Below are positions 9,210 through 57,749 of a stretch of DNA of 64,000 nucleotides, one piece after another (the first letter of the stretch is position 1; each line of letters opens with the position of its first letter). Under the pieces are notes generated by a model. The model ran no database searches, was not told the origin of the DNA, and saw only the letters and a program-made list of their open reading frames with translations. The position numbers were made by a program, and so were the translations under genes. The stretch is taken from positions 6,542,483-6,606,482 of the forward strand of contig SMSO01000032.1 in assembly GCA_004764695.1 (NCBI GenBank), written 5' to 3'. The DNA is from Schizochytrium sp. TIO01. Taxonomy: Eukaryota; Protista; Bigyra: Labyrinthulomycetes.

Positions 9210-9621
9210 ACCTGAAAACCTGTAAGTGTTATGATCGATGCAGCTGATGCAAATGTTTTACATACCCAAGCTGACGAGGGTCTGTGTTTTGGTTTTTACC
9301 TCCCAAATATTTCTGCAGTGCTTGTTTTTTTCGCAAAGATAAATAAGATACTACACCAGATACTCGCGCTCCTTTTTATCTATCGTCGTCTATCAACACC
9401 AAGAAATTTTTTGGATTATCCTAGTAGCCAAACGCTGGGTTGCTCTGTGGCTGCAGGGTTAGAGAACTTCAGCACTTTTCCAGTATGTGGTACGCCAAAC
9501 CCAATCTTGCCCACTTTGGCGTGCCTCTGCGTCGCTGAGTACCTAGCTCAGACAAGCAAGGACCCTCAGACCACTCTGAAGGGGGCAACCCAGCGTCAAT
9601 GGGGTCTGCCCTGACAGGTTT
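9210..9621 (-). promoter_or_regulatory. Putative AUG-depleted 5' leader of paralog 1
   Basis: 412 nt with a single sense ATG (9263-9261), which lies inside a GTATGT donor-like site. Confidence 0.5.
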
Positions 9622-10965
9622 CATAGTTGGCTTTCTGTCAGTCACCACGATTACTGATTACCCGGGATGTTGCTACAAGTTGTAATTGTAATGAACAATA
9701 TTGCCAGTACATTATGCTACCAAGAACCTAGATAGTACCTAGGCAATCTTTTGTTTTTTCTGATGATTCCGTAGATGGGTAGGTAGGATTAACCAATCAA
9801 CTCATTTTCGCTGGTTAGTTTGTACCACCTCACCTCAATTCCTTTAATCAGAGAGTTCTTAATCTCGTTGCCAACTCGTTTTACTCAGATGGAGGTTCAT
9901 AGAACCGCATGTTTGTCCAAAGTCCAACCATTTGACTTAGTAATTAAGGGGGCCTTTCGCAAATCCTTTATGCTGTCAATGCAGTGCGTGTGAAGAACAG
10001 GTAGCTTGGCGACTGACTGTCTTGAATCTTATTACCGTTCCTGCCCAAAACTGGTCCACATTGGAAGGCTCGAAAGACCCTCAAGAACGACTGGAAGCGT
10101 GGAAAGGACAGCAACGCAACCGAAACGGAGTCGGCCTTGGAAGGAGAAAGTGCTACCTAGGTAACTAACTATCCTATCTAGATAATAATAGGTAGAGATT
10201 TTCGTGTCAGTCATCTTTTTATGAGAAATGTGCTGCTCTGGAGACCACACATCATATCGTAATTTATCCATCCATTTTCGGCCTGTTCAACGTATGGTAT
10301 ATTTCGAGAACCACCGAGAATGATAAGAAACACATCCGGGAGTCAGTGTCTGTCAAAAACTAGCGAGATTGCACCGGCGAGGGCGGGTAATATTCAGACG
10401 GCCGGGACGCAACTCGTGGTGAAGAAATAGGATTGAGATTGTGTAGTGTCATTTGCGAGCGCTGTGAGCAAAATGGTGGCTACAACTAACTTGGGTGGGG
10501 AAAATAAAAAAAAATAGAACCACCCAGTGTATTGACTATACGAAAAGAATACAGCTTGAGCCAGATTCAAGCGCAAATCAATGTAATGATGATTTGTGAT
10601 GAAACGAAAAGGCTCTACCTAATGGTTTGCTGAGTCTAAGTGGATAGTCCTATACGCCACGAGTTAAAGTAAATCATGGTGCTACTTCGAAATTCTGTCA
10701 ATCTATATGTATTTTAATGACTGAGGGGAGTACAAACCCTCCAAAGTATCAGGGGAGGTCCGGTTGCATTATTCGAACAGCCCTTCTGGTAATCGGAAGC
10801 TTTCGACATAACCCACCTGAAATACCTGCACATTGCGTAACTTTCATGGGTCCACACGCAGCCATGCCTCGCACGTGTGGTTATTGTTAGATAAATTAAA
10901 GTATAAAGCACAAGCCGACGAAATTACCAATGCGAGTAGTGGCCATTTGCATTCTTTTCAACAAA

Positions 10966-11005
10966 GTTGTTGTTGTTGTTGTTGTTGTTGATGATGATGA
11001 TGATG
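10966..11005. repeat. Compound (GTT)n(GAT)n microsatellite
   Basis: Read directly. Confidence 0.9.
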
Positions 11006-11601: not shown

Positions 11602-14600
11602 TTAGTCTGTTTTGTTGTAAACGTCATATGAGCGGAATTCGGCTGAGCGCAAACGATCAGCATACTTTGGCTTGCGTAGGAAAGCGTCCAGAAACTCATA
11701 CAAGCTATCAAGAGCGTTACCGATATCGTGGAAACATTCCGTCATGAGGGGAAGATTAAGCATCAGAGCAAGGTCTCTTGATGATACGATATGGTCAAGA
11801 AACACCTCATCATTATAAGCACGGCCGATGGAGTCTTGAAGCATTTCGTTTAGCAAAAATGGCGAAGCCACGATTGGCCGTAGAACTGGTAGGGAGTCTC
11901 GCTTTGGATTACGAAGCTGGGCAGAAATCCCTACAAATGTCTGGGTTAGCCATCGATGCGCTGCAAAGAAAACACGGGCAGTCTTCGTATGCATCGTTTT
12001 GGCTGGATGTCCTTCGTAATCAATTGAATAGATCCGCAGCCCACCAAGATGATTTAACTTCCACAGGGCTTGCCAGATATGTTGAGTTGATGTAACTGCT
12101 TTTGCATATAGTTCAAACGGCGCGTCGAAGTTATAGTGTTGCATTGATTCCAAATGGGCTGCCCTCAAGTTTATGCCAGACTCGACATATAGTGCTCGCG
12201 CAACATTATGTTCAAAAGCTGCCACGTCCGGGCGCATAGAATCTAACACATCAGGGTGCTCATAACGATCTGTGAGAACTTGTTCGCAGATGAGCACAAA
12301 GTCATGATAAGATTTAGCTAAGGTTTCACGTAAAAAAATCCTTCCATTGGTAGGCCAAAGGAATAATGAGAGAACCGTTGCTCCTAATGCACCAATTGCA
12401 GAAGATGCAATGACATAGCCAGCGTACCTCCAGATGTCAATATCAGCTGGGTTGTCATCAATAACAAACTCTACCGAGATACTGACCATTGTACGTACAG
12501 TTGCATATCCTATATATCCATGTTTGGGGATCGCAGTCTTCATCCACATGTAAAATGAAAGAGCCGCAATCTCAAAGGCATACAAAATCCACTTCGTGTT
12601 TGGATCTTTGCAACCATTAGCGCACGCAGCTTCCCATCCAGCACTTATAAGTATTGCACCACATGCAACACCAGTTAATCGATGAAACACTCGTTCAATG
12701 ACTAAACCAGCCTGGGTTTTAAAGATTGTAATTTGGAAGGTAAATACCGCGTTTACTAATGCCACAGTGGAATAAACTTCATAGAATGACGACAATAAAC
12801 CAGGAAGTACAAGAAGCGTCGTACCAAGACCTGTTTTGAAAGCTAACTTCCAGGGCAGGTCAGCAAAGAAGTTCATAGCTCCGTGTTCTAACTTGTCCAG
12901 ACGCCCCATAGGTTCATACATATTTTCTTTGCTCGAGGGATAGAGCGTGGGAATAATCGAATCATGAAAAGGAAATGTCATAGCCCACTCGCGGCGTGCA
13001 CCGCCCGGAATATACTCACGTTCCTGTTTAAATGACCCGATCACCTCATGTTGCGCTTTCACCAGCTTGATGAGAATCAACACATAGCTAACCAGCTTTG
13101 TGCGCCGGAAAAACGTTTTATCCAAGACGATATTAGAAAACGCCTTTACAGCGTGCGAGCGCAAATAGCGTTCCATCCAGTTTACAGCAAGTTTATTGAG
13201 CTCACCAGAGAGACTTTCGAGAACAGCCTGTTCTCGGTCCAGGTATCGAAGCATGCGCTCTTTGATATCTACATCAGCAGAAGGTGTAGCCCTCGTTTTA
13301 GCCAATTGAGCCATGCGGTGCGCACCAAGTTCTAAGAGAAGGTTAATCTTTGCGATAAGCTCGGGAATGCGCTTTCTTTCTTCCTCATGGGAAACGTAAA
13401 CATCGTTCGTTGAAGTTCCTGGCTGTGTAAGATCATGCATTCTCTGATTGGCGATTTCCTCACTTTCCACATCTGAATCAATCCAATCTTTGGTACGATT
13501 CTGCTCATATGAATCTGCGGGCGAATTCTCTGAGTTAAAAATACTGTCAGCTGACTCGAGGAAGTCATTTTCATGATTTATAATGTCAGCAGCAGCATGT
13601 CGGGCGTTTCGACTAAGCCCCAAAGTATCGTTGTAACGTCTAAGGTATCGAAGCCCATTGCCGTTAAAAAAGAACCGTGTTTCAAGAATTGCTGATCCAA
13701 CCCATTTCTGAGCTAACGGAATTGACGCAGCCTCTTGCTCATGTGCTTCACGAAGAGCGTGTACGAGAGCAGGTTCTAGTCGCAGTGGTGTTGAGCTTGT
13801 CGATGGTGACAAAGTGTGGTTTGCAATGCGGTCATACACGGGTCGAAGCCTTCGCAATGTTGTTGCATAAGAAATATATCTGGTTCGTAGAGAATCTCGT
13901 GCTGGAGGAATAGACGACCACGGGAATACAAGAAGTGAACATGCGTAGTGGACAAAAAACGACAGTGCAAGACCAAACGTAGCGCCCCCCAGGGCAATGT
14001 TGGACTCCTTGAAAGGATCTTCAAAGTCTTCAAAGTTGTAAATTTTCCACACCTGGACGTGGATCACAGAAAATGTAATTGTCATGTTGATCATGGTCAT
14101 GATGCTTGATGGAAAAAGATTACCTAGAAGGTTTGATCCAACAACTCCAGCAAGTAGCAGCCAGACAAACCCAACTAAATTATGAGCTGCAATCCCAATC
14201 ATGAATAAAGACCACACATAGAAGAATGGCCACAGGATTACAAAAAGAATGACCTGCTGGTGCTCATGACCCAATGTAGTGAGATGAATTGGACGCAATG
14301 CAAGCACAAGTGCAAAGATACCAATGAGGAGTGAGGTATTATAGGTAAGAGAAGTGATCTTCGCAAAAAACGGCAACATAGTAGCTATAGCTGTTGTGAT
14401 TGCATTGCGTACTAAGACCTTACTCGGTCGACTGAGACTGCAAAGATTACACCGAGGTTGGCCTCCCCTAACTTTTGTTCTTGTTGGCCTGGGTTTATCT
14501 GTGTTACTACTATCTTTGCCGCCTTTAGTTTGTCCACCAATATTGTCTGCAGTGGAGATGCGCGATGATTGCCCACGCTCAAGATCGTGCGAATCTGTCT

Positions 14601-14820
14601 TTAGGTCGTGTGCCGGCAGTGGTGCTGCCATGTCTTCGAGGCATCTTTTCACGTATTCATCGACATGCCGGAGCCAATCTTCCTCGCTCTCGTCACGTTT
14701 AAGTTCTAGTAGCTGGCCAGTTTCCTCCTCTCCAGCTTCCTGGATTTTACTTTCGAGTCTTTGTGATTCCTGCTCTTCCGCCCACTCCTGAAATAGTGGA
14801 TTTGGCGCCTTCTCGCCCAT
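11602..14820 (-). CDS. ALMT/FUSC-superfamily membrane protein, paralog 2, 1072 aa
   Basis: Long ORF with shared motifs LRP..G.E, ILETRF, LLLELGAHR, WKLAFKTGLGTTLLVLPG, GLVIERVFHRL, LWP and NFDAP. Confidence 0.8.
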   Translation of the reverse strand: MGEKAPNPLFQEWAEEQESQRLESKIQEAGEEETGQLLELKRDESEEDWLRHVDEYVKRCLEDMAAPLPAHDLKTDSHDLERGQSSRISTADNIGGQTKGGKDSSNTDKPRPTRTKVRGGQPRCNLCSLSRPSKVLVRNAITTAIATMLPFFAKITSLTYNTSLLIGIFALVLALRPIHLTTLGHEHQQVILFVILWPFFYVWSLFMIGIAAHNLVGFVWLLLAGVVGSNLLGNLFPSSIMTMINMTITFSVIHVQVWKIYNFEDFEDPFKESNIALGGATFGLALSFFVHYACSLLVFPWSSIPPARDSLRTRYISYATTLRRLRPVYDRIANHTLSPSTSSTPLRLEPALVHALREAHEQEAASIPLAQKWVGSAILETRFFFNGNGLRYLRRYNDTLGLSRNARHAAADIINHENDFLESADSIFNSENSPADSYEQNRTKDWIDSDVESEEIANQRMHDLTQPGTSTNDVYVSHEEERKRIPELIAKINLLLELGAHRMAQLAKTRATPSADVDIKERMLRYLDREQAVLESLSGELNKLAVNWMERYLRSHAVKAFSNIVLDKTFFRRTKLVSYVLILIKLVKAQHEVIGSFKQEREYIPGGARREWAMTFPFHDSIIPTLYPSSKENMYEPMGRLDKLEHGAMNFFADLPWKLAFKTGLGTTLLVLPGLLSSFYEVYSTVALVNAVFTFQITIFKTQAGLVIERVFHRLTGVACGAILISAGWEAACANGCKDPNTKWILYAFEIAALSFYMWMKTAIPKHGYIGYATVRTMVSISVEFVIDDNPADIDIWRYAGYVIASSAIGALGATVLSLFLWPTNGRIFLRETLAKSYHDFVLICEQVLTDRYEHPDVLDSMRPDVAAFEHNVARALYVESGINLRAAHLESMQHYNFDAPFELYAKAVTSTQHIWQALWKLNHLGGLRIYSIDYEGHPAKTMHTKTARVFFAAHRWLTQTFVGISAQLRNPKRDSLPVLRPIVASPFLLNEMLQDSIGRAYNDEVFLDHIVSSRDLALMLNLPLMTECFHDIGNALDSLYEFLDAFLRKPKYADRLRSAEFRSYDVYNKTD

Positions 14821-16605: not shown

Positions 16606-19600
16606 TTATTCAAGCTTCTTGGAATATATGTCAAAACTGAGTCTTTCAGATGTTCGCAAGCGATCCGCATAAAGTGGTTTTCTCAGGAAGCGCTCCATGA
16701 AGGTAAACAGGTCATCAAGCGCATATGATATGTCTACAAGACTATCATTAAGAAGAGGCAGGTTGCACATGAGCGACAAATCTCGGGATGCAAGGATACG
16801 GTCAAGAAACACATCATCATTATATGCTCGACTCAGAAAATCTTGCAAGATTTCCTGAAGGACATGGGGCGTGGCCGCAACAGGACGTAGAACAGGCATT
16901 GCATCACGGCGTTTTGTACCGAACCGAGCCGCGACAACAGCAAAGGCTGATGTCAACCATCGATTAACGGCAAAAATATCGCGCGCAGTGGTTGGTTGCA
17001 TTGTCACAGCTGCGTTGCCGTCTTTGTCCCGTAGATAAACATATATACCACCCAAGTGGTGCAGCTTCCAAAGAGAATGCCAAATGCGGCGCGTGCTGAT
17101 TACAGCTTTGAGATAGAGCTCGTGAGGAGCATCAAAGTTAATATGTTGCCATGTCTCTAGCTGCGCAGACCTCAGCATTGGAGTCATATCACCATAAAGA
17201 TTACGTGCGATACGGTCCTCGAAAGATGTGATCTTTGGTAGCTCTCGACCCATGTCCTCTGGGTGATCATATCGTTCCGTGAGAATCTGCTCAAAAAGAA
17301 CGATAAAATCCTGGTACGCTTCACATAGACTATCCCGAATCATAGAACGGCCGCTTGACGGCCATATGAAAAGCGCCAACACAAGAGCCACAGCTGCGCC
17401 CACCAGCGATGATGCAACAACATATGAACCTTGCGTCCACACCAGCACACGTGTCGGGCTTTCAGTCTCTGCAAAAACAACTGAAAGACTGACAATAGTA
17501 CGGAAGCCTGCAAAGCCAATATAACCGTATTGTGAATGGGCAGTTCTGACATATAAATATAAAGCAATACTCAAGACCTCCGCTGCGTACAGAATCCATT
17601 TGTGGCTATCAGAATCACATCCACGAATGCAGGCAAGCTCCCACGCCACGCCAATAGTAATGAAACCTAAGATTAAACCAAGGAGACGCTGCAACGTGCG
17701 CTCGATCACTAGACCCGTTTGTGTCTTGAAAAGAATTACCTGGAAGGTAAAGACAGCGTTGGTTAGCTGGACAGAGGAATACCACTGGTAAGAGGACTCA
17801 AGTACACCAGGAAGGGCCAGCAATGTTGTGCCGAGTGCAAACTTGAAGGATACCTTCCAGAGGGTGCTTGAAAGGAAGTTAACCAGCATATCTTCGGAAC
17901 GCGGAATACATCCAAGGATGGGCGTGTAAAATGACTCACGGCGCACTACATCTACAGATGATAAGAACCGACGAGGAAAAGGCACTGTAAGAATCCATTC
18001 CCTCAGCCACGACCTTGATTTAGAATGATCTTCTGTGGAAAGTGCAGTCCATGCATTCTTATTCAGCTTGGTGAGTTTGAGCAGTACGAGAATGTAAGCT
18101 GCAAGCTTAGTACGCTTAAAGATCATGCGCTGGTTGGGTCTGTGCGTATCATGGCCTCGACTCGCGTGCATACGGAGATAGCGACCCATCCATGATAATC
18201 CGAGCTCATATAACTCTCCACCTAACTTATCTAGAAAAACTTGCTCCCTGGCTAGCATTGTAAACGCGTTCGCTCGTGTCTCAACTTCAGATTTATCACC
18301 CGGCTCTGAGCTAGAGAGGATGGCGAGGCGGTGAGCTCCAATCTCAAGTAGCAAGTTGATTTGTGTAATGAGTAAAGGGATCCGCCTTCGTTCTCTCACT
18401 TTGCGATCTAACTCTGCCTTTTCGAGTTGAAATTCTTCTGTAGCTTCTCTTTCCAGAAAGAGAGCCTTTTCTTGCTCTAATTCCTCCTCAGCTTCATCGA
18501 GGTTTGAGCGAGCACGGGTGTAGGAGCGTTCGAGTTTAGTAAGGAGATCGGTAGCCGCAGAGCGCGCACAGCGTGTGATGGAAAGTGATTGTTCATATCG
18601 CGATACATAAGCCATACCCCGACCGCCTAATCCAAATCTTGTCTCTAGAAGAGCGTTCCCAAGCCAATTCTGTGCTACCTGAATTGAAGCGACTTCCTGC
18701 GCACGGGCCTCAGCAAGCTTGTCAAGGAGATCTGCTGGGATACTGAAAGGGGTTTCTTGTGCTGTCGGGTCCAACGTATAAACAGCAATACGATCATACA
18801 CTGGACGCAACCTACGAAGGAGCTTCGCATAGGAGCAGTAACGATTGTTCAGAGAGTTCCTTGCTGGCTTTGTGGCCTGCCATGGGAAAATCATCACGGC
18901 ACCCACAAAGTGCAAAAAATAAGGCAGCGAGATGCTAAAGGTTGCACCGTCTAGAATATCAATTGAAGTGCGAAACTTTGTGTCCTCGTCAGTGAGCCCT
19001 TTAAAGTTGTAAGTACGCCATATATTAATCTGTATAAGCGTAAAAGTAATTGATTCGAGAACAACACAAAGAGTAGTAAAGTTATTACTCAAAAGCGCAA
19101 GCATCCCAAACATAGTTGCAAGGCCAAAAAGGAACATGAAAACTCCCAAGTTGCTTGTACCTACAGCAATCATGAAGCAAGACCATGCGTAGAATAGAGG
19201 CCATGTAAAAACAAATGACAGCACCTGCTGCACCTCTACACCAATGCACGTATTGTTTAATGGTCGCAAAGCAAGAATCAGAACAAAAATGGGGGTCAAA
19301 ATAGAGGAGCCCTGTGAAATGTCCCGGACCCTCGACAGAAAAGGCATAAGAAGAGCTATGGTGGTTACAATGGCGTCACGAATTAAGATCATTTGCAGGC
19401 GTGTAAGGCCTGGAAGTTTTCCAGTAAGAGTCAAATGCCTTTTGGAAAGTTCTGCTGTTGATCGATGTCTAGTAAACCCGCGCTTCTTTGTGCTTTTGCT
19501 ATCTTCTGAAGGCGGAGATCCGAGTGAGCGGCCTGAACCAAATTTACCTCCATCTTCGCCACGCTCAAGGTTCAGGTTCAATTCGCCACCGATGGCACTA

Positions 19601-19860
19601 ATAGGCGGAATAGCCACTGGTGATTGCTGTGGGTGCAACCCAGGAGAGGAGTACGGAGTGATGGGACCGTAGGGTTCATGCTTCATCGCCTCTTTCAGGC
19701 AGGTCCTCGCATACTGTGTTACTTGCTGTAGGACATCCTGCTCACCCGATTCAATATTCTCCTCTAGGTTCACGAGCTCTTCCAACTCCACATCGACGGC
19801 ATCGTCAAGTTCTTCTTGCAGTGCAAGGGCATCAAGATCTTGCGACCAATCTTGAAACAT
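16606..19860 (-). CDS. ALMT/FUSC-superfamily membrane protein, paralog 3, 1084 aa
   Basis: Same motif set. Closest to paralog 1 (shared ERRRIPLL, KRTKLAAYILVLL, RDAMPVLRPVAATPHVL). Confidence 0.8.
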   Translation of the reverse strand: MFQDWSQDLDALALQEELDDAVDVELEELVNLEENIESGEQDVLQQVTQYARTCLKEAMKHEPYGPITPYSSPGLHPQQSPVAIPPISAIGGELNLNLERGEDGGKFGSGRSLGSPPSEDSKSTKKRGFTRHRSTAELSKRHLTLTGKLPGLTRLQMILIRDAIVTTIALLMPFLSRVRDISQGSSILTPIFVLILALRPLNNTCIGVEVQQVLSFVFTWPLFYAWSCFMIAVGTSNLGVFMFLFGLATMFGMLALLSNNFTTLCVVLESITFTLIQINIWRTYNFKGLTDEDTKFRTSIDILDGATFSISLPYFLHFVGAVMIFPWQATKPARNSLNNRYCSYAKLLRRLRPVYDRIAVYTLDPTAQETPFSIPADLLDKLAEARAQEVASIQVAQNWLGNALLETRFGLGGRGMAYVSRYEQSLSITRCARSAATDLLTKLERSYTRARSNLDEAEEELEQEKALFLEREATEEFQLEKAELDRKVRERRRIPLLITQINLLLEIGAHRLAILSSSEPGDKSEVETRANAFTMLAREQVFLDKLGGELYELGLSWMGRYLRMHASRGHDTHRPNQRMIFKRTKLAAYILVLLKLTKLNKNAWTALSTEDHSKSRSWLREWILTVPFPRRFLSSVDVVRRESFYTPILGCIPRSEDMLVNFLSSTLWKVSFKFALGTTLLALPGVLESSYQWYSSVQLTNAVFTFQVILFKTQTGLVIERTLQRLLGLILGFITIGVAWELACIRGCDSDSHKWILYAAEVLSIALYLYVRTAHSQYGYIGFAGFRTIVSLSVVFAETESPTRVLVWTQGSYVVASSLVGAAVALVLALFIWPSSGRSMIRDSLCEAYQDFIVLFEQILTERYDHPEDMGRELPKITSFEDRIARNLYGDMTPMLRSAQLETWQHINFDAPHELYLKAVISTRRIWHSLWKLHHLGGIYVYLRDKDGNAAVTMQPTTARDIFAVNRWLTSAFAVVAARFGTKRRDAMPVLRPVAATPHVLQEILQDFLSRAYNDDVFLDRILASRDLSLMCNLPLLNDSLVDISYALDDLFTFMERFLRKPLYADRLRTSERLSFDIYSKKLE

Positions 19861-21535: not shown

Positions 21536-21578
21536 CTTTGCTTTGCTTTGCTTTGCTTTGCTTAATTTTGTTTTCCTC

Positions 21579-21614
<36 letters not shown>

Positions 21615-27300: not shown

Positions 27301-27414
27301 GTCGAGCTCCCTGCGCTCGGCAAGACTAGCCTCAGCTAATTGGCTCTCCTGTAGTCTCTCATATTGTTCTTCGGACCATTCTTGAAAGAGCTGTTCGGCT
27401 CTGCCGTCTGTCAT
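24319..27414 (-). CDS. ALMT/FUSC-superfamily membrane protein, paralog 4, 1031 aa
   Basis: Same motif set. Start context caaaccATG. Closest to paralog 5. Confidence 0.8.
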   Translation of the reverse strand: MTDGRAEQLFQEWSEEQYERLQESQLAEASLAERRELDTLRRDASGDEWLEKVDQYARKCLREMSAPGHTSYDLEKGEAAPPPLPTATPVDEKPKRSRWCKFTFGLPEKILVRNAVVATIALFLPFWEIIQTISYNTSLMIPILALILALRPIHMTCLGYEMQQIMVLLSAWPFYIVYSILIVAISPRNIVGYLVLFFVGVLIAFLIGVLRVSVLMTLMGPTITFSIIHVAIFQIYNMNDYEYPFTEVMLALGGATFGIGAAFIVHWLSAVLIFPWSANKDARQSLQNRYAMYASVLRHLRPVYDRIAIHTLNPKASSCHTRIEKDLIDALDDARQKEISSIPVTQKWVNAALLETRFFRKGDGYRYLERYTNTLNISRSARAAAADVVNNREDFEIDNEEDGPSETLEFHKSIFRRQDSIEHATIDDAEAERKALERENIPVLITKLNLLLELGAHRMAKLVYMVPSDRSNDEAREHTLKQLEREQGAMEKIAKELEDLAITWMQRYLRTHATQAYDSSNTEIPDHVFFKRTKLISYVLVLLKLVKEQKQVTEEFAKESIPDKTLAQKEWDMTFPFADPIIPTLHSSDKENLYKPFDSWISRWEHATLTLFSSNEWKLSFKFALGTTFMVLPGMLQQSYKWYSLMQFVNGIFAFQVVLFKSQTGLVIERVIHRLCGVIAGAIIIGVAWELACINGCTDENRKWILFAFEVVALLCYLWFKTKWPPWGYAGYSMVRTLVSISVGFVKSSDPSQINVWKEGGYVIASSAIGATGALFLSICFWPTSGRDSIREAIAGSYHDFIVLVEQVLTDQYEHPYKIDTMSPHLAAFEHRIARTLYLETGMMLRSVQLEDLQHVNFDAPLPLYSKAVKCSQEIWQSLWKLNHLGGVQIYLRDKEGNPSKTMNTDTAQIFFAANRWLTTSFAAVASQLNKRDRSSSPVLRPIAASPRLLNEVVHNFVGRAYRDELFLNHVMSSRDLALMLNLPLLADCLHEISRSLDGLYELMETYLRTPIYADRLREAERLSFDLYKIE

Positions 27415-45100: not shown

Positions 45101-45349
45101 AACAAGTTTTGATTCTATCGGCGAAAGATCATGCTTTGACACAACAGACTCAAAGCCTGACATATTACGCAAGTAATCTCGAGCATATTGCTCCACCCCG
45201 TTTGGTGAGGCACCTATTTGACTTCTAATGCGTTCAGCTTCTTCACGCTCTGCATTGTTGGCATCTTGCAGCTCACTGCGCAAGCGATCTTCCCTCCTTT
45301 CTTGGTCAAAGTCCTCAAACACTGCATCTGCTGCAGCATTGTCCGTCAT
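42167..45349 (-). CDS. ALMT/FUSC-superfamily membrane protein, paralog 6, 1060 aa
   Basis: Same motif set. Shares ALVETRFKFNGEGMAYLDRY and HRLGGIAAGLVLAGIAWEFTCIGGCG with paralog 7. Confidence 0.8.
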   Translation of the reverse strand: MTDNAAADAVFEDFDQERREDRLRSELQDANNAEREEAERIRSQIGASPNGVEQYARDYLRNMSGFESVVSKHDLSPIESKLVKGSSHGPASDIESGDSHTAKSVHEKKEALLSSAHTPWGFLYQKIHSLSQADKNLIRHVLVCIIGLLLPFSVTIRHLAGQLTNLIPVYTVVLTLRPLQHTSIGMEVNSAMIFIAIWPCIYAYAVFMVAVTIHNLGGYMTLQALAVGGLILLVWKHPPNLPTTVVQLINFSVTAVSMYSAGNFKGLTSEDEIFAKSITILNNGTFSMAMPIAMHLVASFIFFPFMATGRLQDALGARYSAYASLLHKLRPVYDRIAVYTLDPLHESKYDDSCIEADVLQKLDEVRDQEINSITLTQSWLEAALVETRFKFNGEGMAYLDRYDKSLHLTRIARSTASDILGMTNKDFEKLANELRDEKELFENEGSTLRDKNAHSQENDEQRKLELDRIPVLITELSLLLELGAHRFSDLARSRPGDNTYTEDFSVLLKEQEILNSIAEELDKLAVSWTKRYIRMHATLAESRSSELVAAFFRRIKLITYVRALVKLVKAHEDTLLTFQAESRANPNNWKKEWTSTFPFVDQLLKGAQYAARRALYVPPEGTVGRLESAMVKYFSDLGWKGSLKFAFGTAMLSLPAMLPSSYQAYSTVQLINAIFTFEVVLLKTQEGLIIERFFHRLGGIAAGLVLAGIAWEFTCIGGCGTENHEWIFFAFEMLALGAYFFIKQTKPNYAYAFFSLLRTITSMVIIYFNASERTHSYYWITAGYVMLSSVIGAVGALFLALCIWPVSGRLLIRQNLAQVYHDFILLYEQVLTERLKHPEMSECTSQKVAAFEDQIASTLYVNMAGKLRSALLETQQRIRYDAPHEEYVKAVESTRRIWHSLWKLHHLGGIRIYMRDAQGNTVEAMQHETAQAFFAVNRWLTSAFTAVSARLLSDRRDSLPVLRPLAATPPLLKSMVHGFLRQAYQDKKFIDHLLQSNDLSKLLSLPLLAQNLTIISHSLDEVFTFMEHFLNKPTYALDLRDAEEKTFDVYTNHHPYISLV

Positions 45350-46402
45350 ATTGGCGGCAGGTTGTAGTTGACGTTGAAGGCAACCTCGAGCCCGGCCCTA
45401 CCCAATCTGTGTCGAGCTAAGACCTACGACGAGTAGAACTATGTCAATAGGTATAGATGTGACCTAGGCACCTTGCCAAAGCCAGCCAGCGGCTACCCGC
45501 TTGGTAGCGTCGTTGCCGCCCTAGCCCTTATAAATGATCTCGTTGTTGTTAATTTGCAGCCCTTTCTCTATTGACAAGAGCTTGTGCCTTCGATGCTTGT
45601 TGTCCACTCTTGATTTGGCCTGCTCCACGTATATTCTGCTCGTTCGAAACGTGTTTGCTTCTTCAACCCCTGGATACTCAATGTCCCTCGATAAATTCCA
45701 AATGCTCAAGAAATAGATGCTTTGGTAGCTTCTTAACATGAAAAGTAGGTCCAGGCACTAACTTTCTCAGACCACTGTATATAAGTACAGAGGCGAACCG
45801 CAGACGGATCCAGTGAGCTCTAATGCCAGTGTCCAAGGCGTCCCTCTATTTCAGAGAGATTCAACTTGCCAGCGTACGCCTTCCAAAGTTGCGGCGAGCT
45901 CAATCTTGCTCTCGCAAGTGTAATTTTCGCGTGCGTCCGTCCGTCTTCGGCACTTGCAAGCTTCCGCCCGAAGACTCGCCAGCTCAAGTAATTGGCCCTT
46001 GCCTTCTAGCCTAGCCTAGCAGCCAAACAATAAGCAAGTCTTTCGCCAGCACTCGCGATGAGCCCGACTTGGCTCCGATTTGCCTCCTCGCTTGACGCTT
46101 CGCCGTTTTCTTCCTCGTAAACTCCAATCTGTGTTTCAATATTGAGAGAACCCTCCACAATTTGCTTATGCTGGGTACTTCTCGAAATGAACCAACCAGG
46201 CAAGCCAAAGCCGGGCTTCTCCAAGCACACCACCACGATGCAGGGTTTCTGCAATGTATCAATCAGGAAAGGGTATTGCCTCTTCCCAGAAGGGAGCCAA
46301 CGTAATCAATATATCCTCAATGCGGATTTGCACGAATAACAAGAAAGACCACTAAAAAACACTCTGCTTTTTTTTTTTTTTTTTTTTTTTTTTCCTCTGT
46401 TT
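45350..46402 (-). promoter_or_regulatory. Putative AUG-depleted 5' leader of paralog 6 containing one uORF
   Basis: 1053 nt with one sense ATG (45739), which opens a 72-codon uORF. Confidence 0.6.
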
Positions 46403-48056: not shown

Positions 48057-51000
48057 TTACATGATTGTAATCACTGGATGCTCGTGCGTGTATACGTTGA
48101 AGCTTGCCTGTTCGGACAGGCGGAGATCCTTAGCGTACGTGGGGGTGAGAAGAAAGTGCTCCAAAAAGGTATAAACTTCATCGAGGGAGTGGGAAATAAG
48201 GACCAAATTTTGCGCCATCAAAGGGAGGTTGAGCAACAACGATAAATCATCTGATTCCAACAGGTTCTTGATAAATATGTCGTCATGATAAGCCTGTCGA
48301 AGGAAAGCATGGACCATGTCGGTCAATAGAGATGGTGTTGCTGCAAGGGGGCGTAGCACTGGGAGTGAATCTCGACGCTCAGATACTAAACGGGCGGAAA
48401 CAGCAGTAAAGGCAGATGTGAGCCAGCGATTTATGGCGAAATACGCACGCGCAGTCTCGGGAAGCATGCCATCTACAGCTTCGCCACAGCGATTTCGAAG
48501 GTATATACGAATGCCACCGAGGTGATGCATCTTCCACAACGAATGCCAAATTCGTCGAGTGCTCTCGACAACTGCCACGTACTCATCATAAGGCGCATCA
48601 TAATGTAAGTTCTGCTTTGTTTCAAGCTTAGCAGAGCGCAATTTCATGGCCATGTTCACGTATAATGTGGTTCCAATTTGATCCTCAAAAGCAGTGATCT
48701 TCGGATCTTCTGATTCAGACATAGAGGGATCTCGAAAACGCGCTGTGAGGACCTGCTCGTATAAAAGAATGTAATCGTGGAAAACTGTTGCAAGAGTCTT
48801 ACGAATAAGCGATCGCCCACTCACAGGCCAGATGCAGAGGGCTAAGAACAAAGCACCAACCGCGCCGATGACTGATGAAAGCATGACATACCCGGCATCA
48901 AGCCAATAGTATAATTGTGTAGGTTCCGCAACACTAAAATAAACTACAACCATGCTCGTAATGGTGCGCAATAAAGAGAAAAACGCATAAGCCTGCATTG
49001 GCATAATTTGCTTGATATAAAAGTACACACCAAGTGCAATAAGTTCAAATGCAAGAAAGATCCACTGTCGATTTGCCTGCCCGCATCCGCCGATACAGGT
49101 AAACTCCCAAGCAATTCCAGCTAAAACTAATCCTGCAGCAATACCACCCAGACGGTGCAGAAAACGTTCTATTACAAGCCCCGCCTCTGTTTTAAGAAGA
49201 ACAACCTGGAATGTGAAAATTGCATTGACAAGCTGTACCGTTGAGTACACCGCGTACGACGTCGAAAGCATGCCTGGCAAAGATAGCATGACCGTACCAA
49301 ATGTATACTTAAGTGACCCTTTCCATCTTGAATCGTTGAAGAAACGGACCATCAAGGCTTCGCATCGACCTAAAAACGTTTCTGGAGCCTCGTAGAGTGC
49401 AGAGCGCGCTGCTGCTTGTTTCCCGTTGATTAGCTTGTCCACAAAGGGAAATGTATATTTCCATTCTTTTTGCCAATCCTTTTTATCGCGAAGGCTTTCT
49501 GTGCGAAATGTAATTAATGTGTCTTCATGTGCTTTAGTGAGCTTGAGCATAGCTTGAATGTATGTAATGATTTTAATTCGCTTGAAAAAGGCTGTTACCA
49601 GCTCTGTGGAGCTTTCATATGCCATTGCTGCATGCATGCGAACATAGCGTCGAGTCCAAGTTACCGCGAGGCTTTCGAGCTCAGATGCAATTTTATTCAT
49701 GATTTTTTGTTCACTTTCGAGATCTTCAAACTCTTTCTCCAAACCTTTACAACCTGGGTCCGATCCAGCTAACTTTGCGAGCCGATGAGCGCCAAGCTCC
49801 ATAAGGAGGCTTAATTCAGTGATTAGCATTGGAATTCGTTTAAGCTCGACCTTATGACGCTCATTCTCTTCATCATTAACACAGATATCTAGAGCTGCAG
49901 TTTGCTTCCTGAAGAGACGCTTGTCAGCGTGCAAGTCACGAGCCAGCTCGTTAAAATCTTTAGAACGAGCACCAAGGATATCAAGCGCTGTGCTGCGTGC
50001 GATGCGTGTCATGTGCAAACTACGTTCGTAGCGGTCTAAGTAAGCCATACCTTCACCATTGAATTTAAACCGTGTCTCAACTAAAGCAGCCTCAAACCAA
50101 GTCTGGGCAAGAGCAATTGAACTGATATCCCGTTGGTGAGCTTCTTCAAGCTCCTGAAGTAGTTCTGCATCCACATTTGAAGAGTCATAGTTGGCTGCGT
50201 TTGCTGGATCAAGCGAATGCATAGCAATGCGATCATAGATTGGTCGCAACTTATGCAATAATGAAGCATGAGCTGAGTATCGGGAACTCAAAGCTGCTTT
50301 CATTCGGGTTACGCCTAAAAATGGAAAAAAGATGAAAGCCGCGGCGAGATGCAAGGCATAAGGGATCCCCATTGCAAAAGTACCATAGTTGAGAATCTTA
50401 ATGCTTGCGTCAAAAATTTCCTCATCAGTACTGGATGAGGACTTAAAGTTTGCGTTGGCGAAAATCGCAACAGCAATGAGAGAGAAGTTAACTAGCTGGA
50501 TAATTGTGGCTGTTAAGTTTGTAGGATGCTTCCAGACCATGAGAATGAGCACCATGATTGCAAGCGATTGCAATGTAGCATAACCGCCAAGGTTATTTAA
50601 GGAGACTGACGCCATGAAAACTGTGTACGCATAAATCAGGGGCCAGATGATCATAAAAATAAACGAGTGATTTACCTCCATGCCAATGCATGTTTGCTGC
50701 AAAGGGCGGAGCGGAAGGACGACAGTGTAAACAGAAATCAAATTGGTAAGGCTTCCACCATAAAGTCGAATAGTAGGAGAATATGGCAGGAGGAGACCCA
50801 CAACACAGACTATCACATGTCTGATGATGTTTTTCTCAATTTGAGTAAGCCCCATAACTTTATTCCACAGCTGTTTGAAAGGTCTTAAACAAACTGGGGT
50901 TTCCTTTGCTTTTTTGTCTTCCGCTTCTCCATTTGCTGCAGGCGTTGCTGCTGGGGACTCTGATTCAAACCCAGATGATGATTCTGGCCGATGAAGTCGA

Positions 51001-51266
51001 CCAGAACGCCCTCCCTTGTCTAATCGATAAAGGCTGCGTTGTGAGATAAGGGACTCAAATCCAGATATATTCCTTAAATAATTTCGAGCATAGTGTTCCA
51101 CGCCTTCCTCAAGATCAGATTTGTCAATCTGCTCTTCGATCCGAGAGGCCGCTTCTCGCTCATCATTAACAGCCTCCCTGAGTTCTGTTCGAAGGCTTTC
51201 TTCACGCTTGTCTTCATCATATTCCTGAAACGGGGCTTCTGCCCCTCCTACATCTTGCTGAGCCAT
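48057..51266 (-). CDS. ALMT/FUSC-superfamily membrane protein, paralog 7, 1069 aa from MAQQD
   Basis: Same motif set. The track start at 51284 is GTG; the first ATG is at 51266 (aacatcATGg). Confidence 0.8.
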   Translation of the reverse strand: MAQQDVGGAEAPFQEYDEDKREESLRTELREAVNDEREAASRIEEQIDKSDLEEGVEHYARNYLRNISGFESLISQRSLYRLDKGGRSGRLHRPESSSGFESESPAATPAANGEAEDKKAKETPVCLRPFKQLWNKVMGLTQIEKNIIRHVIVCVVGLLLPYSPTIRLYGGSLTNLISVYTVVLPLRPLQQTCIGMEVNHSFIFMIIWPLIYAYTVFMASVSLNNLGGYATLQSLAIMVLILMVWKHPTNLTATIIQLVNFSLIAVAIFANANFKSSSSTDEEIFDASIKILNYGTFAMGIPYALHLAAAFIFFPFLGVTRMKAALSSRYSAHASLLHKLRPIYDRIAMHSLDPANAANYDSSNVDAELLQELEEAHQRDISSIALAQTWFEAALVETRFKFNGEGMAYLDRYERSLHMTRIARSTALDILGARSKDFNELARDLHADKRLFRKQTAALDICVNDEENERHKVELKRIPMLITELSLLMELGAHRLAKLAGSDPGCKGLEKEFEDLESEQKIMNKIASELESLAVTWTRRYVRMHAAMAYESSTELVTAFFKRIKIITYIQAMLKLTKAHEDTLITFRTESLRDKKDWQKEWKYTFPFVDKLINGKQAAARSALYEAPETFLGRCEALMVRFFNDSRWKGSLKYTFGTVMLSLPGMLSTSYAVYSTVQLVNAIFTFQVVLLKTEAGLVIERFLHRLGGIAAGLVLAGIAWEFTCIGGCGQANRQWIFLAFELIALGVYFYIKQIMPMQAYAFFSLLRTITSMVVVYFSVAEPTQLYYWLDAGYVMLSSVIGAVGALFLALCIWPVSGRSLIRKTLATVFHDYILLYEQVLTARFRDPSMSESEDPKITAFEDQIGTTLYVNMAMKLRSAKLETKQNLHYDAPYDEYVAVVESTRRIWHSLWKMHHLGGIRIYLRNRCGEAVDGMLPETARAYFAINRWLTSAFTAVSARLVSERRDSLPVLRPLAATPSLLTDMVHAFLRQAYHDDIFIKNLLESDDLSLLLNLPLMAQNLVLISHSLDEVYTFLEHFLLTPTYAKDLRLSEQASFNVYTHEHPVITIM

Positions 51267-51875
51267 GATGTTTGTCAAGCCCACAAGTACAGTCTCTAAT
51301 TCTGTATTTTGCTATAAAATTTGCAGCTTGAAGTGCCTGAGTAAAGGTTAGGCACGAGAGTTAAATTCAAGAAATCACAGAGGAGCACAAAATTTCACCA
51401 GCAACAGTCTCCCTGTCTTGACAATTGATGATTAAATTCTGCAAAGCTCTGTCACTAGGCTGTACAGCTTTGGGTATTCTGCTTTCGCCAATAATAGCTT
51501 AAGAAACACCTGCAACGCGCGATCACAGCCAATACGCAACAGTGAATATGCTATGCTACAAGAACCACCAGCGGTTGCTCTTATACCGCCTTTGCCTCCG
51601 TGAGCCCCCCCCCTTTGCAAAGGGCAGCCCACGCCCTTCTGGCAAGCAGGATACAGCTTTGCTCTTTGAGTTCGCCGTCTTGAAGAGTGGAGCGAGCTGA
51701 TCAGAAGATCTGCAGCGAACTCTACCAAATGTTAGAAGGGTGTACGAAAGAGAAAAAAGTCCTGATCACTTTTCCGACTAACTTACAGCGGAGCAGTGAC
51801 TTGTTTGGGTTCCTTCGCAGTGGAGTCCTGGTGTGCAAGCTCGTCTCCACCAGAGCTAGATTATCCTTCCCGTGC
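51267..51875 (-). promoter_or_regulatory. Putative AUG-free 5' leader of paralog 7
   Basis: No CAT on the + strand over 609 nt. Minus-strand GTAAGT donor-like site at 51786. Confidence 0.55.
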
Positions 51876-52880: not shown

Positions 52881-55800
52881 CTAATTATTGTTGTTGTTGT
52901 TGATGGCGTAAATGTCGAAGGTATGTTGTTCTGCTTCCCGGAGGCGCTCTGCATAGTCAGGCACAGGAAGGTAGTTCTCCATGAGCGTAAATAGGTCGTC
53001 TAGCGCAAAGGAGATTTGCATCATGCTATCTGCAAAGAAAGGCAGATTAGCGAGAAGATTGAGGTCTCGAGATCCCATTATTTGCCCTAACAAAAGTTCA
53101 TCATTATACGCTTGAGTTAGCAAATCTTGGAGCATCTCGTTCAGTAAATGGGGACTTGCTGCAAGTGGACGCAGGACCGGTAACGATTCACGCTGTGACG
53201 AACCAAGCTGAGCGGCTGCGGTAGCAAAAGCCGAAGTCAGCCAGCGATTGACGGCAAAAAAAGAACGAGCAGTGGCAGGTTGCATGGCAACAGTTGGATT
53301 GCCATCCTTATCACGCACGTAAATTCGGATGCCACCAAGGTGATGGAGCTTCCATAAGGAGTGCCAAATCAGACGTGTGCTGTCAACAGCCTTGACGTAC
53401 ATTTCGTGTGGGGCATCATGGTTAACATGCTGCATTGTCTCAAGCTCGGCAGAACGAAGCTTGGGCATCATATTTACATAGAGATCGTGAGCAATAACAT
53501 GCTCAAAAGTTTCCACACGCATCAGCATCTCCTCGCCGCGTTCTGGACGCTCATAGCGTGCAGTGAGAACCTTTTCGTAGAGCACCACAAAGTTGTGATA
53601 AGTATGCGAGAGTGTCTTGCGGATAAAGAAACGCCCGCTCGAGGGCCAAAGAAAGAACGCCAACACCAGGGCTGCTGCGCCACCAATTGCTGAGGAGGCA
53701 ACCACATATCCGGATTGGGACCAAGCATATCCCATATCAGCTTCAACGGTAGCAGTGGAAAGCATGGCGAGACTGACCACGGTACGACAAGCTGAGAATC
53801 CAACATAACCATGAGCAGGCACAACACTACGAAACCAAAGGTAACCTCCAATAGTAGCCATCTCAACAGCAAAAAGAATCCAATAATAATAGTCGGTCAG
53901 GCATGTGCCAATGCATGCAAGTTCCCATCCGACGCCAATGATGATTGCGCCGATTGCGATACCAAAAACACGATGCAAAGTACGTTCAATGACCAGGCCT
54001 GTCTGGGTCTTAAAAAGGATGAACTGAAACGAGACGTTTGCATTCAAAAGCTGAATACCAGTAAAGAGTGCATGTGAGTTTGTCATAAGCCCGGGAAGAA
54101 CAAGGCATGTGGTACCAAGCGCAAATTTGAACGACATTTTCCAGGTGTAGCTGGAAAAGAATTTTGTGCACCAATTCTCAACACGACCCATTACGCTCTT
54201 TACTGGCTGATAGAAAGAGCGCCGGCTGGCATTGTAGTAAGAAGGCAGCTCAGTGTATTGAAATGGAAAAGTGTACTTCCATTCCTGGAACCAAAAGCTT
54301 GGTTGGATTTCATATTCACTGGCAAGGTCATGCCACACCTTTTCGTGTGCCTTAATTAGTTTGAGAAGAATGAGAACGTAGGTAATAAGCTTGGTACGAC
54401 GAAAGAATGTCTCTTTGTTCGGGCGGGAGAGGTTGTGCACGCGAGCAGCATGCGCTTTAAGCACACGCTCCATCCAAGTTACAGAAAGATCCTCAAGCTC
54501 GATCGCGTACTTATTGAGAGCCTCTTGCTCTTGCTCAAGAAGGCCAAGGAGTTGCGTTCGGTCTTTTGACCAGTCAACCTCATCGTGTTTAGGGGGTGGC
54601 AAGCTCACCAAAGTAGCCAGACGTTGTGCTCCAACCTCAAGGAGGATGTTGATCTTGGTAATAAGAAGAGGGATTTGGGTGCGTTCTAAGACCTTGCGAT
54701 TAAGTTCTGCAGTGTCTAGTTCAACATTCTCTTGCTGTTCCTGCTCCAAGAAGCGCTCCTGCTCCCGCCGAAGATCTTTGCCAGCGCGTTCATCTCCACG
54801 GGACGCAAGGTATTGCTTGCGATGCAAGGCCCCGAATGCAGCTGAACGAGCAATACGTGTGACACTCAGGTTGCCATTGTAACGCTGGAGGTAGCGAATA
54901 CCTTCTCCACGAAACATAAAGCGAGTTTCAAGAAGCGCTGCTGCAACCCACTTCTGACCGAGTGCAATCGAAGCAACTTCATGCTCATGTGCGGTCTTTA
55001 ATTCTTGCAGAACTTCGTCAGGGATACCTGAGGGAGTGGTCTGCAGGGTTGGGTCAAAAGTGTACATGGCAATTCGCCCATAGACAGGACGAAGTCGGCG
55101 AAGAAGCACAGCGTGAGCAGAGTAACGGGTGCTCAAGGCTTGGCGAGTCTGACCCACTGCAAACCATGGGAAGATCATTACAGAACCAAGCCAGTGGAGA
55201 ATTACGGATACTCCAAGCACAAAGGTTGCACCCGTAATGGTTTTAATGGATAGCCAAAACTCATCCTCAGCTACACTACCAAGGTTGACATCACGCCATA
55301 CCTGAAGGTGCATGATGGAAAAAATAATGGTTTCAATCAAAATGCCAAGAATGATAGAGGGGTAAGAGAGCCCAATCATAATAGCAACCAGAACAGCAAT
55401 TCCAAAGAGTGCGAGGAAACCAGCAATGTTGTGCAAAGTTACTGCAATCATAAAAACAGAATAAGCATAAAGGAAGGGCCACGTGACGAGGCATGCTATG
55501 AATTGTTCAGTCTCAGCACCAATAAATGTATCATTGAATGGACGTAATCCAAGCACCAGAACGAAAATAGGAATAAGATATTCGAGATCGTTTCGCGAGA
55601 GTTCCCCGATACTAGGCATCCATTGCAGGATACATGCAATAAGTGCCACAACAGCATTCCGAGTGAGGACTTTCCAAAACCGGCTGGTCTTACCTGAGAA
55701 GAATGTGCGCAAGGAGCTCATGCATGAGCCAATTTGCTCTTTTGCTTTAGATGCTGCTGACGGCTTTTTCTCTTCTTCTTTTTCTGGGAGAGGAATGCAA

Positions 55801-56057
55801 GGGTTCCAAGACTCCGAATTCGGGTTTACGCCGTCATTCTGTGGATGGTACTCTTGATCTTCGGCTAGTGAAGTGATTTCTCTAAGACTCTCCTTTGCGT
55901 AAAGTTCTACTCTATTAAACAAATTGCCATGTTCTTCTGAAGATTCAAGATCTGAGACTTGGGAGCGCTCATTATGTGCAATTGTCTCAAGTTCTGAGCG
56001 CAGGCGGTCCTGTTCCGCATCTTCAGACCAGTCACCGAAGAGTTCGTTAGCTGCCAT
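52881..56057 (-). CDS. ALMT/FUSC-superfamily membrane protein, paralog 8, 1058 aa
   Basis: Same motif set. The charged linker REQERFLEQE...ELNRKVLER resembles paralogs 1 and 3. Ends in poly-Asn. Confidence 0.8.
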   Translation of the reverse strand: MAANELFGDWSEDAEQDRLRSELETIAHNERSQVSDLESSEEHGNLFNRVELYAKESLREITSLAEDQEYHPQNDGVNPNSESWNPCIPLPEKEEEKKPSAASKAKEQIGSCMSSLRTFFSGKTSRFWKVLTRNAVVALIACILQWMPSIGELSRNDLEYLIPIFVLVLGLRPFNDTFIGAETEQFIACLVTWPFLYAYSVFMIAVTLHNIAGFLALFGIAVLVAIMIGLSYPSIILGILIETIIFSIMHLQVWRDVNLGSVAEDEFWLSIKTITGATFVLGVSVILHWLGSVMIFPWFAVGQTRQALSTRYSAHAVLLRRLRPVYGRIAMYTFDPTLQTTPSGIPDEVLQELKTAHEHEVASIALGQKWVAAALLETRFMFRGEGIRYLQRYNGNLSVTRIARSAAFGALHRKQYLASRGDERAGKDLRREQERFLEQEQQENVELDTAELNRKVLERTQIPLLITKINILLEVGAQRLATLVSLPPPKHDEVDWSKDRTQLLGLLEQEQEALNKYAIELEDLSVTWMERVLKAHAARVHNLSRPNKETFFRRTKLITYVLILLKLIKAHEKVWHDLASEYEIQPSFWFQEWKYTFPFQYTELPSYYNASRRSFYQPVKSVMGRVENWCTKFFSSYTWKMSFKFALGTTCLVLPGLMTNSHALFTGIQLLNANVSFQFILFKTQTGLVIERTLHRVFGIAIGAIIIGVGWELACIGTCLTDYYYWILFAVEMATIGGYLWFRSVVPAHGYVGFSACRTVVSLAMLSTATVEADMGYAWSQSGYVVASSAIGGAAALVLAFFLWPSSGRFFIRKTLSHTYHNFVVLYEKVLTARYERPERGEEMLMRVETFEHVIAHDLYVNMMPKLRSAELETMQHVNHDAPHEMYVKAVDSTRLIWHSLWKLHHLGGIRIYVRDKDGNPTVAMQPATARSFFAVNRWLTSAFATAAAQLGSSQRESLPVLRPLAASPHLLNEMLQDLLTQAYNDELLLGQIMGSRDLNLLANLPFFADSMMQISFALDDLFTLMENYLPVPDYAERLREAEQHTFDIYAINNNNNN

Positions 56058-57749
56058 TTGCCCCCCAAGGCTCTGTTTTTTTGTTTACTTTTTTTCGCTG
56101 TAACTTCAGTGATTTCAGATTTTGGTTTTGGTCACAATCAGACAACTATGTGTTACTTTGATGTCTCTTCAAATGGGCACAACACACAAATTGTTCGACT
56201 TGACTTGTGTCTTTCCACCCAAGATCACGTAGAAAGAACAGGCGAGGAAAACACAACTGATGAGAAAACAACGAAGTTGATAGAGAAGGGCAAGATCTTG
56301 AGATCCAACAGGAACCCTAGAATTGAAAAGTTGCGAGTGGCAAAGTCCCGAACACGTTCACGCAAACTTCCCCGTCACTCTTGTTGCACCGACCAATTCT
56401 GGGCCGGTTTTACTGACCTCCTAGCCTTCTTGCTATATTGGCAACAACACACCCACCAATAGCCTTTATCAGAGCAATTGAGGTACGTAACGACGATCTT
56501 GCTTTGCAATGTACCCGCTTAGCGGTTCCTGAAGGATATTTTGATTGAGTTTTCGAAGAAAAAAAAAATCGCGAAGACTGGCTGATCCCAATTTGGATCT
56601 GATCAGGTCGAGGTGAGGACGTTCCTATTCGGGTGGTTCTTGCAGGATCCGCACTGCTTTTACAAGCAGATGCCTTGACTTTTCTTCAGGGGTGCGTGCT
56701 AACTGATTCTAGGAGGTTCCCTTTTTATCAGTATAATGTTTGTTGGTCAATGCAGGCAACCAACGTGATTGGTACGTGTACAAGATGAACCTCCAAAAAC
56801 GTGGTTTGCCGTTGTTGTTGTCACTGTCTTTGCGACAAGGGCGCCTCAGTGACGTCTGCCAAGTTCACTGACGATTCTAAGGAGTTTAGTTTCTACAAGG
56901 ATCTTGTGGGAATAAGATCTATAGGCAATGGTTTTTCTGTGGACCCTAATTGTCTCCAGAGGACAAGCAAAAGAAATGTGGCTGTGACGAGGGACTTTAT
57001 CGAGCGAGATTCTCTAAATGACCTTCAAGCGTGTTGAAGACCTCTCCTTGTTTGCCAAGAACGTACCCTGCACAATCTCAATGCTCTTTCAACGCTTATG
57101 AAGGAGCTTCGTTCAAAGTTGTTGAATAACACTTGGGTGGAAGGCACCAAGTCAAGACGGAATGAAGTAATGCGTGGCCCTTTGCGTACCTGGACCCTCG
57201 GACTTGAAGCGAGAGCCTCCAAGCACCGTCTTCTGTTTCCAGGTCAATGCGCGATACTCACGCTTGAGCCCTGTATCGAAAGGGTTGATTCAGGAGCGAG
57301 TGCTCAGAGCAGAGTTGGTTGAAATGCCGCAAATTGACTGAAGACTGACGAAAATGTATCGAAATGTATCGAAACCGGCGACTGATCAACCAAGTGATCA
57401 CGACTCGGGCCGACTCGAGCCGACCGAGTAACCACGTGACTTGCTTGGCGAGTGGACAGATAAGGGACGTAGCCCGCTGCCGGCAGCCTTCACGAAGCCG
57501 ACTGGAGTTGCACGCCTTGCGCAAGGGGAGCAGGCCAGAACCGGAGGTGGCTTGCCAGTTCCTCTGCTTTCTTTCCCTCCTTCGTTCGTTCTTTCTTTTC
57601 TTTAGTTTTTGTTGTTGTTGTGCTGTTGTTGACTCTTTGCCAAAGAGATGTGGCTGAAAGCAACCAGCCTACCCTGCTGGTTCGAAAGGTCTATGCTGAT
57701 GTTCTTTGGGGAGGTCCTGTCACGTATCTACCAGACTAACAGCGTTGGT
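56058..57749 (-). promoter_or_regulatory. Putative AUG-free 5' leader of paralog 8
   Basis: No CAT on the + strand over 1692 nt, while more than 20 ATGs occur on the + strand. Confidence 0.7.

Follow-up and report, generated by a model that had tools for sequence, protein, structure and literature searches.

The stretch of Schizochytrium sp. TIO01 DNA analyzed here, in the following called the window, comprises 64,000 nucleotides (nt) of contig SMSO01000032.1 (assembly GCA_004764695.1, 64 Mb in 37 contigs; positions 6,542,483 to 6,606,482). It harbors a tandem array of eight long minus-strand open reading frames (ORFs) of 1026-1085 amino acids (aa). The first-pass annotation described eight paralogs, but the array actually consists of nine: the 3' end of the ninth is located in the window and the rest past its end, and 943 ATG-free nt precede its start codon. 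The subject of the present analysis is the tracts directly upstream of the nine start codons, termed leaders below, which are nearly devoid of ATG on the sense strand. The window has a GC content of 45%, and its ATGs are balanced overall (1152 vs 1108 on the two strands). The features of the array are as follows (an uAUG is an upstream AUG, an uORF an upstream ORF).

5952 to 9209, minus strand: paralog 1 ORF, 1085 aa, ALMT/FUSC-like membrane protein, identical to database protein P0004
9210 to 9621, minus strand: leader 1, 412 nt, one sense ATG (AUG-UAA)
9258 to 9263, minus strand: minimal uORF AUG-UAA, 54 nt 5' of the paralog 1 start
11602 to 14820, minus strand: paralog 2 ORF, 1072 aa
14821 to 15288, minus strand: leader 2, 468 nt, no sense ATG
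16606 to 19860, minus strand: paralog 3 ORF, 1084 aa
19861 to 20509, minus strand: leader 3, 649 nt, no sense ATG, with a stop-free run of 174 codons, the codon score of which is unlike that of coding DNA
24319 to 27414, minus strand: paralog 4 ORF, 1031 aa
27415 to 28974, minus strand: leader 4, 1560 nt, no sense ATG, 14 antisense ATGs, single-copy in the genome
35473 to 38553, minus strand: paralog 5 ORF, 1026 aa
38554 to 39457, minus strand: leader 5, 904 nt, one sense ATG (two-codon uORF)
39044 to 39052, minus strand: two-codon uORF AUG-AGG-UGA, 499 nt 5' of the paralog 5 start
42167 to 45349, minus strand: paralog 6 ORF, 1060 aa, identical to P0005
45350 to 46402, minus strand: leader 6, 1053 nt, one sense ATG
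45521 to 45739, minus strand: 72-codon uORF with the sole uAUG of leader 6, weak context uucAUGu
48057 to 51266, minus strand: paralog 7 ORF, 1069 aa counted from the first ATG
51267 to 51875, minus strand: leader 7, 609 nt, no sense ATG
52881 to 56057, minus strand: paralog 8 ORF, 1058 aa, matching P0001
56058 to 57749, minus strand: leader 8, 1692 nt, no sense ATG, 23 antisense ATGs, single-copy, read contigs continuous with the ORF
57750 to 57773, minus strand: 5' edge of leader 8 with the first upstream ATG (57752-57750) and the end of a read contig of run X6 (about 57770-57773), the putative neighborhood of the transcription start site (TSS)
63945 to 64000, minus strand: 3' end of paralog 9, whose ORF extends to 67115 and whose 943-nt ATG-free leader lies outside the window

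Taken together, the nine leaders comprise 8305 nt and contain three sense ATGs versus 100 on the antisense strand (CAT). The expected number is 126.6, as calculated from the rest of the same intergenic DNA with one ATG per 66 nt (Poisson P = 4e-50). ATG is the rarest of the 64 trinucleotides in the eight leaders of the window by more than 13-fold: it occurs four times, one boundary ATG being counted, every other trinucleotide at least 53 times and CAT 84 times, and the expected number of ATGs is about 122 if calculated from the base frequencies and about 80 if the dinucleotides of the leaders are used. Chance or composition as the cause of the ATG lack is rejected by the Poisson probability and by the balanced base composition (A.26-.31, C.21-.25, G.22-.27, T.20-.27). 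The trinucleotide absent for the longest distance upstream of the start is ATG in seven of the nine paralogs. Each of the eight tracts is bounded at its 5' side by an ATG, the spacing of ATGs is normal again directly 5' of each tract, and the edges are sharp. The start codon is strictly the first AUG after the tract edge in six of the nine paralogs, the other three having one uAUG, and a purine is present at -3 in eight of the nine main starts. Our recount reproduced exactly the tract lengths and sense ATG numbers that the first-pass annotation had given for the eight leaders.

The leaders are neither repeats nor copies of one another. None is a tandem repeat, thus rejecting a low-complexity nature of the tracts, and the genome has only one copy of each of the two longest (leaders 4 and 8), which rejects an origin from repeats or transposons for these two. 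The earlier impression that the segments share no obvious similarity is confirmed by BLASTN, which found no significant match between leaders (best 16-24 nt at E >= 0.09). Shared 8-mers do not clearly exceed shuffled controls except for A-rich low-complexity words, and neither a boundary motif common to the leaders nor unusual folding (mean z = -0.18 over 75 windows) nor any Rfam family or tRNA was found in them. A metagenome scan, made with a cross-species comparison of the leaders in view, revealed no relatives.

Two further ATG-free gaps of considerable length on the minus strand of the window were rejected as leaders; one is a (TGAA)n microsatellite and the other, at 61.4-62.1 kb, a stretch with repeats. 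The microsatellites (TCACTCAT)10, (TGAA)60 and (GATGC)10 are clustered at 30838-31533 in the 8-kb gap between paralogs 4 and 5, with the (TGAA)n repeat at 31060-31306, and this cluster accounts for a 528-nt ATG-free gap (30950-31478) and a spurious 178-aa ORF. The second stretch (61432-62099) has about 650 nt without ATG on either strand, repeats of 19 and 30 bp, and several ORFs of 166-236 aa that overlap in different frames; those tested have no Pfam match.

The distribution of ATG-free runs among unrelated genes of the same genome was assessed in 100 kb of other DNA with 22 non-overlapping ORFs of at least 250 aa. The median ATG-free run 5' of the first ATG is 115 nt in these controls, whereas CAT gives 69 nt and a typical trinucleotide about 50 nt, and the excess of the ATG run is significant (Wilcoxon p = 8e-4). 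Its heavy tail consists of runs of 752, 590, 524, 469, 324, 284, 253 and 239 nt, and the longest of them precede the genes for glutamate synthase (752), a Pho80-type cyclin (590), a PXA-RUN-PX sorting nexin (524), an unknown protein (469) and POT1 (324). The glutamate synthase gene (GOGAT, 1602 aa; L002:4481-9289, plus strand) has the longest ATG-free run among the controls at 3729-4480. The array exceeds the controls clearly (median 612 vs 115 nt, Mann-Whitney p = 0.0017), and three of its leaders have at least 943 nt compared with the control maximum of 752 nt. The array is located at the long end of a genome-wide continuum, and the same feature precedes unrelated genes.

In the control DNA, ATG-free gaps of at least 350 nt abut the start of a long ORF exactly in five cases; the others do not. 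An ATG-free gap of 350-600 nt is therefore not diagnostic by itself in this genome, since many such gaps do not close on a long ORF. A 12-kb stretch of the same genome (L007-L008, G000:C35:1012000-1024000) has no ORF of at least 250 aa and many ATG-free gaps of 350-600 nt on both strands; it may represent intron-containing genes or compositionally odd DNA. Two genes at the start of the window on the same strand are unrelated to the array, namely, one for an Iml2/TTC39-like tetratricopeptide repeat protein (301-2172) with a 239-nt ATG-free run upstream, and one for a PfkB-family sugar kinase (3627-4694) with a 55-nt run.

The nine array proteins are mutually 36-65% identical, and no degenerate copies were found between the array genes by tblastn. 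Paralog 8 corresponds to protein P0001 of the Aurantiochytrium transcriptome MMETSP0961 (100% identity in one comparison, 99.6% by BLASTP) and shares 67% identity with a hypothetical protein of Hondaea fermentalgiana, matches that identify the source of the DNA as a thraustochytrid (labyrinthulomycete stramenopile). Its C-terminus (52881-52910) is a poly-Asn tail, and the MMETSP protein is four residues shorter (1054 vs 1058 aa). Paralog 9 (window-equivalent 63945-67115, G000:C31:6606451-6609582) has 1056 aa and is identical to P0003. No Pfam family was found at E <= 0.001 for the paralogs tested, and no paralog of the window reaches any cut-off; the best match among ten members is FUSC_2 with E = 9e-4, which is under the curated cut-off. 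A PDB sequence search with the family profile gave no match, and only 45 representatives were retrieved with the profile among 1.8 billion proteins. Distant profile matches, including P0033 and P0039, bear ALMT, FUSC_2, ArAE_2_N and BRE4 domains. An AlphaFold model (pLDDT 69, pTM 0.64) has ALMT12, ALMT9 and ALMT1 as its top PDB matches in Foldseek, with a probability of 1.00, a target TM of about 0.5 and E-values of only 7e-3 to 9e-2, and the proteins are built of two transmembrane blocks with a helical domain after each.

Based on the fold, the profile links and the two-block layout, the array proteins constitute a two-module branch of the ALMT/FUSC/ArAE superfamily that is divergent and restricted to its lineage. 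They share the ALMT-type fold and a profile link with bona fide members of this superfamily (BRE4-type), but differ from them in that they remain below the Pfam cut-offs, lack a PDB sequence match and form a tiny clade. The term "channel paralogs" of the first-pass annotation stands as far as the fold matches ALMT anion channels; the channel activity is putative, and "channel" is a reasonable working name.

The most probable explanation, which we hold with good confidence, is that the tracts are long, unspliced, cap-scanned 5' untranslated regions (5' UTRs) held AUG-free by purifying selection. Transcription of each of the nine genes would start 0.4-1.7 kb 5' of the start codon and would thus provide every gene with a 5' UTR that is long, non-coding and unspliced. 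From the cap, where they load, small ribosomal subunits would scan the entire leader, an AUG in any frame would capture them, and purifying selection would consequently purge the sense ATGs, letting the remaining leader sequence drift past recognition. The leaders can no longer be aligned and their proteins are 36-65% identical, and drift would restore about one ATG per 60 nt; the AUG-free state must therefore have been kept independently in each copy. The proposal of long 5' UTRs that are scanned, selected against uAUGs and kept separately after duplication is supported by the strand- and ATG-specific depletion, the sharp edges, the unalignable leaders, the harmless nature of the surviving uAUGs and the contigs of probable RNA runs, which span leader 8 without a splice.

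The three surviving uAUGs are of the kinds that selection would tolerate. Leader 1 has an AUG-UAA at -54, leader 5 an AUG-AGG-UGA at -499 and leader 6 an AUG at -390, which opens an uORF of 72 codons in the weak context uucAUGu. One- and two-codon uORFs permit an efficient resumption of scanning and a pyrimidine at -3 favors leaky scanning, so that an AUG-stop, an AUG-codon-stop or an AUG in a weak context would cost little. The AUG-UAA of leader 1 and the AUG-AGG-UGA of leader 5 resemble the AUG-stop minimal uORFs of the Arabidopsis NIP5;1 type. The array differs from this type in that minimal uORFs are present in just two of the nine leaders, and their conservation and any regulatory role are only putative here. 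It may be that uAUGs of this kind simply do the least harm.

Transcript evidence comes from read contigs that were examined at leader 8 (window 54000-59999). Run X1 provides one contig of 5493 nt with a depth of 67 (about 52910-58402), which covers nearly all of ORF 8 and the whole of leader 8; its neighboring contigs have a depth of 5-7, and it breaks at the poly-Asn repeat of paralog 8 (52881-52910). Low-depth contigs of run X6, which stems from a slightly different strain, tile 54000-57770 and are followed by a gap until 59282. The end of the last of these contigs is genuine and lies at about 57770-57773, 20 nt past the first upstream ATG. No joints were seen in the X1 and X6 contigs over leader 8 and its ORF, thus indicating that leader 8 is unspliced in these assemblies, whose run type is a guess. 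The X6 variants within leader 8, two substitutions and two insertions, do not create any ATG. The uneven depth and the total contig size of 35-37 Mb versus a genome of 64 Mb fit RNA, the type of the runs still being a guess.

Several points weigh against the interpretation as scanned 5' UTRs. The read contigs relate to a single locus of the array, they show neither strand nor transcript ends, and that the runs are RNA is a guess. The X1 contig overruns the AUG-free edge by 650 nt to 58402, across about ten sense ATGs. Presumably it is read-through of the background, whose depth of 5-7 allowed the assembler to extend until a repeat; another TSS farther upstream or a transcript that overlaps the locus could likewise account for it. 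Runs X22 and X23 have no contigs at the locus of leader 8, which is not evidence of absence. The control set of 22 ORFs is a small sample, and the TSS positions of the array genes are deduced only.

The last point also favors an alternative in which the tracts are not the main 5' UTRs and the main TSSs are located near the start codons, the ATG-free state serving rarer upstream or alternative transcripts or having another strand-specific reason. The overrun of the X1 contig, which makes contig limits imperfect guides, and the many ATG-free gaps of the genome that do not close on a long ORF are compatible with this scenario. We nevertheless regard it as very unlikely, given that selection keeping 1.6-1.7 kb ATG-free implies that the tract is present in most productive mRNAs, that the tract without exception reaches exactly to the start codon, and that the X6 coverage is unbroken across leader 8 and stops at its edge. 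Still less credible is the idea that the tracts are coding, be it as an upstream ORF without AUG, as an N-terminal extension or as a first cistron with leaky scanning. Several leaders do contain stop-free runs of 99-174 codons, but the codon scores of the longest ones (-0.30 to +0.21 per codon) fall between the in-frame (+0.25 to +0.44) and off-frame values (-0.33 to -0.63) of the ORFs, the leaders score near 0 versus +0.35 for the ORFs in frame, stop codons occur at ordinary frequency in all frames of the leaders, and the DNA of the leaders shows no mutual similarity. The protein alignments start at or a few codons from the assigned ATGs in all paralogs (at most 12 codons, paralog 7), and a conserved N-terminal extension is therefore absent; tblastn upstream of the starts gave no match. 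A hidden coding or N-terminal extension, in agreement with the initial reading of the tracts as non-coding, is thus rejected by the stops in all frames, the codon scores, the lack of pseudogene remnants and the homology of the starts. Of the leader and intergenic ORFs, a few were compared with Pfam and gave no significant match. One of them is an ATG-started ORF of 201 aa antisense to leader 4 (27413-28018, plus strand), located beside the start codon of paralog 4, which is probably a chance ORF.

The remaining alternative is the one that the first-pass annotation had put forward, namely, a family-specific translational control shared by the leaders and co-regulating the whole array post-transcriptionally, e.g., in response to pH, organic acids or nutrients. 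It is in keeping with the retention of leaders longer than those of the controls by all nine paralogs despite their divergence, with the preservation of AUG-UAA in paralog 1 and AUG-AGG-UGA in paralog 5, and with the presence of paralog 8 in some runs and its absence from others. However, no sequence or boundary motif shared by the leaders was found, nor any unusual folding or Rfam match; their length varies four-fold and unrelated genes show the same feature, all of which makes this scenario improbable. Moreover, the absence of AUG means unimpeded scanning, which is the opposite of control by uORFs. The AUG uORFs common to regulated mRNAs that characterize a GCN4/ATF4-type switch are missing in the array: six leaders have no uAUG, and the three uAUGs present differ from one another in position and type. 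We found no element that would unite the nine leaders into one control system, and the designation as a "shared translational-control system" is not supported. The AUG depletion indicates that the leaders are scanned; it does not show regulation, and a special regulation of this family is not demonstrated by AUG-free leaders. A regulatory role of leader length is putative. Among the genes of this thraustochytrid the feature marks a genome-wide class, of which the array is one instance, and it is not a family-specific device. What is new at this locus is that all nine old paralogs (36-65% identical) keep AUG-free leaders, to which the locus adds the harmlessness of the remaining uAUGs and the contigs over one leader.

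The avoidance of upstream AUGs normally spans tens of nucleotides, and long leaders elsewhere are usually full of uAUGs; those of Apicomplexa bear many uAUGs and uORFs. In plant pararetroviruses such as rice tungro bacilliform virus (RTBV), AUG-depleted tracts permit long-range leaky scanning. The array resembles RTBV in that about 1 kb of RNA is kept AUG-free so that subunits reach a distal start, but the tract of the virus is coding, whereas the tracts reported here are non-coding, cellular and present on many genes. In the study of Zur and Tuller (2013, PMC3708879), uATG avoidance is described as universal and usually ranges over 16-27 codons upstream. This signal corresponds to ours in affecting the sense strand, all frames and the region next to the start codon and in being attributed to the capture of scanning subunits; the array differs by a near-complete purge over 400-1700 nt, which is about 10-30 times longer and concerns all nine old tandem paralogs. 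Long unstructured leaders cost little translation in yeast according to PMC12415969, and PMC12338608, on Toxoplasma, ranks apicomplexan leaders among the longest documented in eukaryotes. The likeness to Apicomplexa lies in protist mRNAs with very long leaders; the leaders of the array, in contrast, are almost AUG-free, which points to strict linear scanning and not to tolerance or bypass of uAUGs. In the literature that we searched, no paper dealt with 5' UTRs or uAUGs of thraustochytrids.

AUG-free leaders as long as 1.6-1.7 kb indicate that small subunits scan kilobase distances in this protist, and selection evidently acts on every uAUG. More tentatively, and with a good deal of doubt, thraustochytrids may possess a large class of genes with kilobase, essentially AUG-free and unspliced leaders, in which scanning for the first AUG would be very processive and selection would suffice to remove every uAUG over 1-2 kb. 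Leader length, and not sequence, would then be the conserved functional trait of the ALMT-like array, for example by setting the translation rate or the stress sensitivity. If such a gene class exists, its natural leaders would serve as a test bed for long-distance travel of the 40S subunit. Provided that TSS mapping confirms the 5' ends, the leaders would be natural substrates for studying how processive scanning is, whether the movement is diffusive or driven by a motor, and what a long leader costs. The ATG-free run would then mark the 5' UTR and supply a rule for gene annotation and for the design of expression constructs in this industrially used organism.

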